Part shown: piece after piece, positions 49,872 to 50,611 of the stretch
Layout: the number at the start of each line of letters is the position of its first letter
Numbering within the stretch: position 1 is the first letter of the stretch
Assembly: GCA_965644265.1 (NCBI GenBank)
Contig: OZ286474.1
Coordinates: 76,384,001-76,448,000, forward strand
DNA from: Glycera tridactyla
Taxonomy: Eukaryota
Direction: 5' to 3'
DNA: 64,000 nucleotides
Program-made: the position numbers and the translations under genes
Notes under the pieces: model-generated
What the model was told of the DNA's origin: nothing
Seen by the model: the letters and a program-made list of their open reading frames with translations, nothing else
Databases searched by the model: none

Positions 49872-50611
49872 CATACAGTATCACAGTACGATACGGATCC
49901 TTCAACATTCGTTCCATGTGTACATGCAGTACCACAGTACATCAACGATTGTACAGCATGTGACATTGAGTACACACAGTACAACACAAAGAAAAACACA
50001 TTCCAGCATGCCATATTCATTACATACAGTGTCCCTGTACGATGAACATCCTACAGCATGTTATTATAAAGAATGTCCCGAGTGCCTGGTCCTGGAAGGC
50101 GTTACGCGACGAGGAGCGGTCCCGGGAAGGCCCGAGTGGCCGAAGGCCACGAGTGCCTTCCCGGGACCGCTCCGAGGCGGGTAACACCTTCCAGGACCAG
50201 GCACGAGGGACGTTCTATATTTATCATCCGTTGTTTTAATTCTAAAAGTTAAATGAAACTGTAAAAAGCTTTCAAAATTTGAAATTCCCGCCGCGGATGA
50301 CGAATCGAGCGCGCTGTCAATCAAACTCTCTGGACACGCCCACTGCGTTGTTGACATGTATTCATGCGCGACTCGATCCAATCGCGTCACCACTTCTCTC
50401 TCGCGTCTAATATACTGACTGGGATACGTGAGACACATCTTTTGAAGGAATAACAACAAGTTTTATAACATCTGGCTTTATTATGAGACAACAAATTCAT
50501 TCTACGAAGCGTGGGGGTACATAACACAAACAATTGACCGAGAAATCTGATCAAAAAACAACGAACTATATTGTCCCAGCACGCGTATACACTGTGACCC
50601 ACTTTCGAAAT

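Follow-up and report, generated by a model that had tools for sequence, protein, structure and literature searches.

A Crypton element of 2707 bp occupies positions 50064-52770 of a 64,000-nucleotide (nt) stretch of the Glycera tridactyla genome (contig OZ286474.1 of assembly GCA_965644265.1; hereafter the window) and is present in multiple copies in its own genome. One end of this element consists of a long imperfect hairpin followed by an inverted copy of the opposite terminus. We moderately favor the interpretation that 50064-50233 and 52758-52770 together constitute a cis-acting CryptonA recombination site, which would be split by integration and is probably used in a folded form. An earlier reading made without database searches (the sequence-only reading) had proposed that an internal stretch of the element approximates the reverse complement of the junction between its right and left ends; this feature proved to be conserved and covarying, both here and in other animals.

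The left end carries, in order, six unpaired nucleotides (TTATAA, 50064-50069, + strand, as for all parts of the site described here), a 147-nt imperfect hairpin (50070-50216), a 4-nt linker (ATAT, 50217-50220) and a 13-nt internal box, TTATCATCCGTTG (50221-50233). The box is an inverted copy of the right-terminal box CATCGGATGATAA (52758-52770), whose last base is the element end, with a match over 12 of 13 nt. Within it, 50221-50230 (TTATCATCCG) is the exact reverse complement of 52761-52770, as the sequence-only reading had pointed out, and this pair of 10-mers accounts for the only 2 sites in the window, versus 0.16 expected, with none of 100 shuffles reaching 2. The other pairing described in that reading, which ends 4 nt upstream of the box and joins 50207-50216 (GGGACGTTCT) to 50070-50079 (AGAATGTCCC) with one G.T pair, is likewise present; it is not a separate site, however, being the foot of the hairpin and hence of an imperfect palindrome (50066-50220) whose 76-nt arms show 84% complementarity. 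The computed fold of this palindrome as single-stranded DNA (ssDNA) has an energy of -75 kcal/mol (z = -16.7). Similarly, 50070-50079 had been taken for the left terminus and does lie near the end, but the very terminus is the unpaired TTATAA that precedes it.

In all copies, the flanks diverge immediately 5′ of the 6-nt linker, at whose 5′ edge the crossover is placed. Other families carry TTAGAA, TATGAA or TGAGAA at this position, and a conserved left-end TATA box (TATAAAG) was rejected on these grounds. The 4-nt linker is also family-variable (GGAC, GAAC, GAAT, TGAT, TTAT, GGGC) and is unpaired with the 6-nt linker in most families. Pairing between the two linkers was considered and rejected, since it involves 3 of 4 positions in the family of the window copy and 0 in the TTAGAA/GGAC families.

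The 2.04-Gb genome of G. tridactyla contains at least eight near-full copies, together with many short derivatives; these begin with TTATAAAGAATG, finish with CATCGGATGATAA and have unrelated flanks, which upholds the element limits at 50064 and 52770. The hairpin-foot motif occurs 2,049 times in the genome versus 0 in the control. We then surveyed 36 distinct readable copies from at least eight families (62-100% amino-acid identity). The order linker, hairpin, linker and box, with a matching distal terminus, was present in 36/36 copies, and in each of them the internal box lies directly 3′ of the hairpin. The shared arrangement reads four variable nucleotides plus AA, then AGAATGYCCCGAGTGCC, a hairpin of ~147 nt ending in GGCACGAGGGACRTTCT, the family-variable 4-nt linker, TTATCATCCG(A/T)T and, at the distal end, (A)TCGGATGATAA; past the terminal GATAA the flanks are unrelated among copies. 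Six copies (L030, L033, L044, L060, L063 and L065) miss the apical part of the hairpin and have stems of 88-139 nt versus 147, a shortening that fits the instability of long palindromes. At another locus (C34:16413465-16418531; L002, L010, L019 and L022), two copies with truncations are joined head to head close to their hairpin ends, alongside an additional inverted left end, in what looks like a local rearrangement at palindromes.

The internal box and the right terminus change together. The right terminus ends in CGGATGATAA in every family read except L060/L061, and in CGGATAATAA in the single copy L016. In L060 and L061, the internal box is TTATCATTCG and the right terminus CGAATGATAA, amounting to one full compensatory change from TTATCATCCG/CGGATGATAA. 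One-sided changes in the internal box are of three kinds, and each yields G.T and not A.C. L029 and L044 have TTATCATTCG facing an unchanged CGGATGATAA, giving a T.G pair, L013 and L043 have TTATCGTCCG, giving a G.T pair, and L031 shows a G.T intermediate of the box/terminus pairing. Box positions 11-14 vary by family, with complementarity mostly kept. Across families, the complementarity was neither absent, nor non-covarying, nor at chance frequency.

The hairpin itself displays extensive covariation. In an alignment of 24 hairpin copies (A1), 62 pairs could be followed, with 97.1% of cells paired and 29 pairs changed on both sides, cell counts that overstate the number of events given that copies within families are not independent. 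None of 500 shuffles matched this result, and sliding the partners by 1-3 columns gave at most 10 double-changed pairs. In the middle helix of the stem, 25 of 36 pairs covary.

The stem is also asymmetric between strands. A true palindrome is expected to hold equal counts of a word and of its complement; the top strand, defined as the one with the hairpin 5′ of the internal box, contains six CGAG and no CTCG in nearly all copies. These words face each other at three sites, forming tandem G.A/A.G mismatches that never switch strands, vary little or not at all among families, and stand in a 5′-YGAR-3′ context, which permits stable sheared G.A pairs. Mismatch 1 (50079-50082 vs 50204-50207; G50080.A50206 and A50081.G50205) is invariant in 24/24 aligned copies. 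Mismatch 2 (50110-50113 vs 50173-50176; A1 columns 48-49 and 115-116) is G/A in 20-24 of 24, and mismatch 3, near the apex (50133-50136 vs 50150-50153; columns 73-74 and 90-91), in 19-24 of 24. On the same strand, A1 holds 70 G.T cells (26 columns) versus 19 A.C cells (12 columns), and the top strand folds more stably in 28 of the 36 copies, by a mean of 3.1 kcal/mol.

The right terminus abuts a left terminus at 36 genomic places, versus 0 in the control (pattern: terminus at most 12 nt from a hairpin foot), showing that the joined configuration exists in chromosomal DNA. At 14 of these places the linker is 6 nt long and matches known left termini, and at 22 it is 4 nt long. One chromosome carries a tandem array with four junctions 3,157 bp apart, each reading GATAA|TATGAA-AGAATG (C51:22790303-22799806). 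Further head-to-tail arrays (C18:102204976-102212736 and C18:99997525-100000408) have recombinase matches ~2,440 bp apart. The 4-nt-linker places (ATCA, ATTC, GTTC, GATC and others; e.g., C29:80701215 and C31:88226659) were identified by pattern match.

Joining the right end to the left end completes a palindrome of ~180 nt. When we folded the joined top strand, as the sequence-only reading had suggested, the minimum-energy structure in 8/8 families consisted of a 12-13-bp outer stem, a 6x4 internal loop and the hairpin. The 6-nt linker forms the 5′ side of this loop and the 4-nt linker its 3′ side, and the element boundary (GATAA|TTATAA) falls exactly at the border between outer stem and loop. 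For the window copy, the joined form folds at -85.9 kcal/mol versus -75.8 for the left end alone.

The insertion sites point to one crossover position. No target-site duplication was found in the flanks of the 36 copies. In the left flank, position -5 is biased toward G (p = 5e-6), -3 toward T (p = 8e-5) and -2 toward A (p = 2e-7), so that -5 to -2 tend to G-R-T-A, like the right terminus GATAA; this likeness is degenerate and makes no exact direct repeat. The right flank has a weak T/A at +1. Every copy has its 6-nt linker at the left end, and in none does the linker recur at the right flank (36 to 0). These data fit a single fixed crossover.

The same layout was found outside G. tridactyla. 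A protein search returned recombinase homologs at 31-50% identity, some of them named KIAA1958-like by their source (hemichordates, bivalves, cnidarians), and the layout, built from unrelated sequences, was present in 5 of the 10 foreign loci examined. In the hemichordate Ptychodera flava (L077), 78-nt arms that are 94% complementary lie 390 bp after the stop codon and abut an 18-nt box that matches the distal terminus at 17/18 positions. The four others, all in ENA assemblies, have arms of 92 nt with a box matching the distal terminus at 15/15 positions (L076), 47 nt with 14/14 (L080), 71 nt with 12/12 (L084, an element within a (TA)n tract) and 37 nt with 11/11 (L085). The distal termini of these elements all start with TTAT or (T)AAT, and the left end of L077, TATGAC-AGAAC, is near the TATGAA-AGAATG of one G. 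tridactyla family. In the hairpins of L076, L077, L080 and L085, nearly all non-Watson-Crick positions are CGAG facing CGAG on the top strand, and the CGAGTG/CACGAGGG motif of mismatch 1 recurs in L076 and L077. In L076 (2925-7391, a Crypton of ~4.4 kb), the gene lies on the CGAG-marked strand, opposite to the other cases. As the gene is flipped there and the CGAG strand is unchanged, the polarity follows the element ends rather than the gene.

Based on these results, we propose the following model. The site would be assembled by joining the two ends, and would then read right-terminal box (12-13 nt), 6-nt linker, 147-nt hairpin, 4-nt linker and internal box. Once folded, the boxes would pair into the outer stem, the linkers would form the unpaired 6x4 loop, and the hairpin foot (AGAATGYCCC/GGGACRTTCT) would provide a second duplex, giving the geometry of a tyrosine-recombinase core site, with two binding duplexes and a short unpaired spacer between them. 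We infer that the recombinase would bind and use this folded site in vivo, most likely as a single top strand, and would exchange that strand only and at a single fixed phosphodiester, which is how IntI acts on attC and XerCD on the attP(+) of CTX phage. In an integrated copy, the right terminus could anneal to the internal box, which would act as a splint, bringing both boundaries together and allowing a circle to be excised. The G.A tandems on one strand, the excess of G.T over A.C, and the fixed crossover without linker homology at targets are indirect evidence in favor of a folded single strand. The folded-strand interpretation put forward earlier is thereby partly supported, with geometry and strand asymmetry on its side and the single-stranded step as its inferred part. 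Only tentatively, we extend the model to animal CryptonA in general, which might move as folded ssDNA, with one G.A-marked strand being recognized and exchanged, and replication completing the event.

Several observations weigh against this model, and some of them fit a conventional double-stranded mechanism, the main rival, which we regard as rather unlikely and still deserving of serious weight. There, both boxes would be recombinase-binding sites of the usual kind and would amount to asymmetric terminal inverted repeats; the junction GGATGATAA-TTATAA-AGAATGTCC would be a normal core site with a 6-bp spacer, and the palindrome an accessory (a cruciform or bend placing the internal box by the left boundary, a platform for the N-terminal domain, or a replication origin). 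A typical recombinase core is indeed made of two inverted 11-13-bp arms around 6-8 bp (PMC3212892), and the junction has a weak dyad, with GGA 6 nt from the linker on both sides. The covariation of box and terminus would be equally expected if one protein recognized both as double-stranded DNA, the CGAGTG/CACGAG motif is conserved in sequence and not in structure alone, and the symmetry of the palindrome could be maintained by something other than selection on folding. In a hairpin-less form, found at 7 places on 6 chromosomes (C18:9496109, C7:481485, C7:92778842, C4:100479306, C10:14202169, C32:77763605 and C39:18811877), AGAATGTCATTCT immediately precedes the internal box. In this lineage, to which L008 also belongs, the 147-nt hairpin has collapsed to AGAATG(T/G)CATTCT with the internal box kept, which suggests that the lineage moved after stem loss, so that mobility either does not strictly depend on the long stem or can draw on one provided in trans. 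On the other hand, canonical exchange of two strands needs identical spacers or else leaves both orientations, whereas the linker is found at the left only (36 to 0) and the right flanks lack homology to it; spacer homology would leave a direct repeat, and without homology both outcomes should be seen after replication. A double-stranded mechanism also leaves unexplained why purine-purine mismatches sit on one strand across phyla, whatever the gene orientation, and why the middle helix covaries at 25 of its 36 pairs rather than drifting.

Other points also count against the model of a folded strand. The excess of G.T over A.C is moderate and comes from phylogenetically non-independent copies, and the folds were computed with ViennaRNA DNA parameters, in which sheared G.A pairs are not modeled specifically. 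The 22 places with a 4-nt linker may be tandem junctions with a shorter linker, or may belong to a family with a complete palindrome at one end. In three small contig-level sequencing runs, which contain 3-13% of the words and are uninformative either way, we saw neither a circle or a single-stranded form nor a read across the junction. Finally, the layout was not found in the other five of the 10 foreign loci. L078, on a contig of just 3.4 kb, has an AT-rich palindrome with 79-nt arms and no matching terminus; L079 lacks a palindrome and carries part of the gene, the one palindrome found in L081 is (AT)n-like, and in L083 neither hairpin nor layout was found. L082 (6468-8561) has a hairpin with 66-nt arms and one G.A tandem, and a 13-nt inverted repeat brackets this hairpin together with 1.9 kb, leaving the recombinase gene outside; it may be a neighboring non-autonomous element or represent a different layout.

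The remaining explanations fare less well. The sequence-only reading had compared the site to the internal complementary region of DIRS elements, and in a strict version of this idea the internal stretch would serve as a template or splint that completes or ligates the ends of a copied linear intermediate. Formally, the stretch does consist of a left-end complement, a spacer and a right-end complement, and DIRS elements combine such a region, complementary to both ends, with a related tyrosine recombinase (PMC13465315). The comparison holds only as an analogy. Among the open reading frames (ORFs), domains and repeats of the 2.7-kb element, we found no reverse transcriptase, for which there would be no room, no RNase H or methyltransferase, and no long inverted terminal repeats. 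Moreover, the complement of the right terminus (12/13) adjoins a complement of left-end nucleotides 7-16 that is itself the 3′ arm of the hairpin, the first 6 nt being unmatched in most families, and linkers of 6 and 4 nt that are non-complementary in most families would make the splint discontinuous. We consider this version improbable. We are equally skeptical of a role of the hairpin as RNA (a structured transcript, small-RNA precursor, terminator or guide) next to a box that would be there by coincidence. Tandem G.A and G.U pairs are common in structured RNAs, and microRNA-precursor models gave weak scores of 21-26 bits; these are far under thresholds, and no Rfam family reached threshold for 49950-50650, where only weak generic hairpin-type hits were obtained. 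The favored strand is antisense to the recombinase gene in the window, L077, L080 and L085 and sense in L076, so that polarity tracks the ends, and on that strand the hairpin begins 6 nt from the 5′ end of the element, which leaves no internal promoter upstream. Neither the pairing of box and terminus nor the position at the boundary is explained by an RNA function. As for chance, or an unrelated foldback element inserted at the end of a Crypton, short inverted matches are common in 2.7 kb, and 25 inverted pairs of at least 10 nt were listed here. However, the 64 kb contain the 10-mer at two sites only, every family shows the layout, as do ~2,049 genomic copies of the hairpin foot and other animals, and the flanks diverge outside the hairpin and not inside. 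We give this explanation almost no credence, as multi-copy conservation, hairpin covariation and the genomic count of feet refute it.

The element encodes a tyrosine recombinase on the minus strand (50612-51931; 439 aa from a GTG codon), with matches to PF12012 (DUF3504; 6.5e-20, 72 bits vs a cut-off of 29.7) and PF00589 (Phage_integrase; 3e-12). An alignment with homologs at 33-49% identity shows R142, K179, H285, R288, H311 and Y320 to be invariant, so the predicted catalytic set R-K-H-R-H-Y is intact. We assign the element to the CryptonA type because of these two domains and the invariance of the catalytic residues. The N-terminal part of the recombinase lies in another reading frame in the window copy (51889-52206, minus strand), in an ORF that overlaps the first, and in copy L048 a single 517-aa ORF spans both parts. 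No second ORF with a domain hit was found in the window element by ORF listing and Pfam search. The genome contains at least 96 recombinase matches at 62-100% amino-acid identity, mostly open frames of 500-650 aa, and 150 DUF3504 matches.

Other features of the window element are as follows. It is inserted in a 50-bp satellite, which forms the left flank (49920-50063, no strand assigned) and resumes at 52771-53040. The first base past the element (52771) is a T, where neighboring satellite monomers have C (gttaCatttgg), and represents either a later substitution or a 1-nt insertion mark. The right subterminal region (52490-52690), which lies upstream of the recombinase gene, contains four ACGTTC words in the same orientation (at 52575, 52585, 52605 and 52680), along with TGACCT/AGGTCA half-sites and CACGTGAC. 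L059 has a similar cluster, and the ACGTTC word is also found within the hairpin foot GGGACGTTCT. This motif cluster may correspond to a promoter or to arm-type binding sites. A 22-nt inverted repeat, 91% complementary and with 33 nt between its arms, lies inside the recombinase coding region (51165-51241).

Compared with known systems, the element resembles described CryptonA in having a single ORF with DUF3504 and tyrosine-recombinase domains, no reverse transcriptase and no target-site duplication (PMC3212892). The DUF3504 region is as in CryptonA and in the Crypton-derived genes KIAA1958, ZMYM and QRICH1, short non-autonomous derivatives outnumber autonomous copies, and the last 5 nt of the element reappear weakly, in degenerate form, in the left flank, which recalls the short terminal direct repeats of other Cryptons. 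It differs in that a conserved 147-nt hairpin makes up one end, with the opposite terminus repeated in inverted form next to it, and in that the elements are abundant (~2,049 hairpin feet) and often tandem. With the integron attC/IntI system (PMC2727003), the site would share an imperfect palindrome split on integration, most of it at one end and the last few nucleotides at the other, which when folded presents two duplex boxes around an unpaired spacer and a variable distal stem. Non-Watson-Crick marks on one strand, a fixed crossover point, little target homology and tandem arrays are further likenesses. Unlike attC, the present site is eukaryotic, is served by an unrelated recombinase subfamily and has a far longer stem; its asymmetry marks are tandem G.A rather than extrahelical bases, and in place of the R box (GTTRRRY/RYYYAAC) and an IntI-type integrase, which are lacking here, the boxes are CGGATGATAA and AGAATGYCCC. 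The attP(+) site of CTX phage, which is recombined by XerCD, is similarly presented as a core site with an unpaired center by a folded single-strand hairpin of ~150 nt, and in that system exchange of one strand is completed by replication, with tandem integrated copies within the cycle. CTX relies on host recombinases and the chromosomal dif site, whereas the element here has its own recombinase and many loosely similar sites.

The closest described arrangement is that of Helitron2/Helentron elements (Bao and Jurka 2013, PMC3627910), whose asymmetric terminal inverted repeats consist of a terminal repeat with an inverted subterminal copy at the other end, directly before a 3′ hairpin. Compensatory changes have been reported there too, and gene orientation also flips relative to the ends (PMC3627910). 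Helitron2 elements nevertheless depend on an HUH Rep/helicase enzyme and ssDNA, whereas the element here encodes a tyrosine recombinase only; their hairpin lies ~20-30 bp from the end and is not ~150 nt long, and they also have a 5′ hairpin and insert next to T. The resemblance is one of layout only; we regard it as convergence and count it in favor of the proposed model.

Kojima and Jurka (2011, PMC3212892) state that animal Cryptons yielded neither direct nor inverted terminal repeats, a 2022 curation guide gives a short direct repeat as their only distinguishing feature (PMC8969392), and a 2026 paper on fungal CryptonA reports Cryptons with only short direct repeats or poorly conserved ends. 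In the literature searched, which is incomplete and leaves Repbase entries outside, we found no description of a Crypton with a hairpin, a palindrome, a single-stranded substrate or an attC-like layout; a hairpin adjoining an inverted copy of the far terminus has, within that literature, not been described for Cryptons.

To our knowledge, the mechanism of Crypton transposition has never been shown. The finding provides a conserved, covarying and strand-marked hairpin site with a defined crossover, shared with a hemichordate, as a concrete substrate for in vitro work. The site is also a practical signature for annotating the boundaries of Cryptons and their abundant short derivatives. Its use in the way proposed here would explain how a tyrosine recombinase can do without spacer homology and insert at many sites. 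Should the single-strand reading be true, a mechanism known only from bacterial integrons and filamentous phages would extend to animal genomes, making the site a eukaryotic counterpart of integron attC and CTX-phage recombination and connecting it mechanistically to the internal complementary region of DIRS elements.

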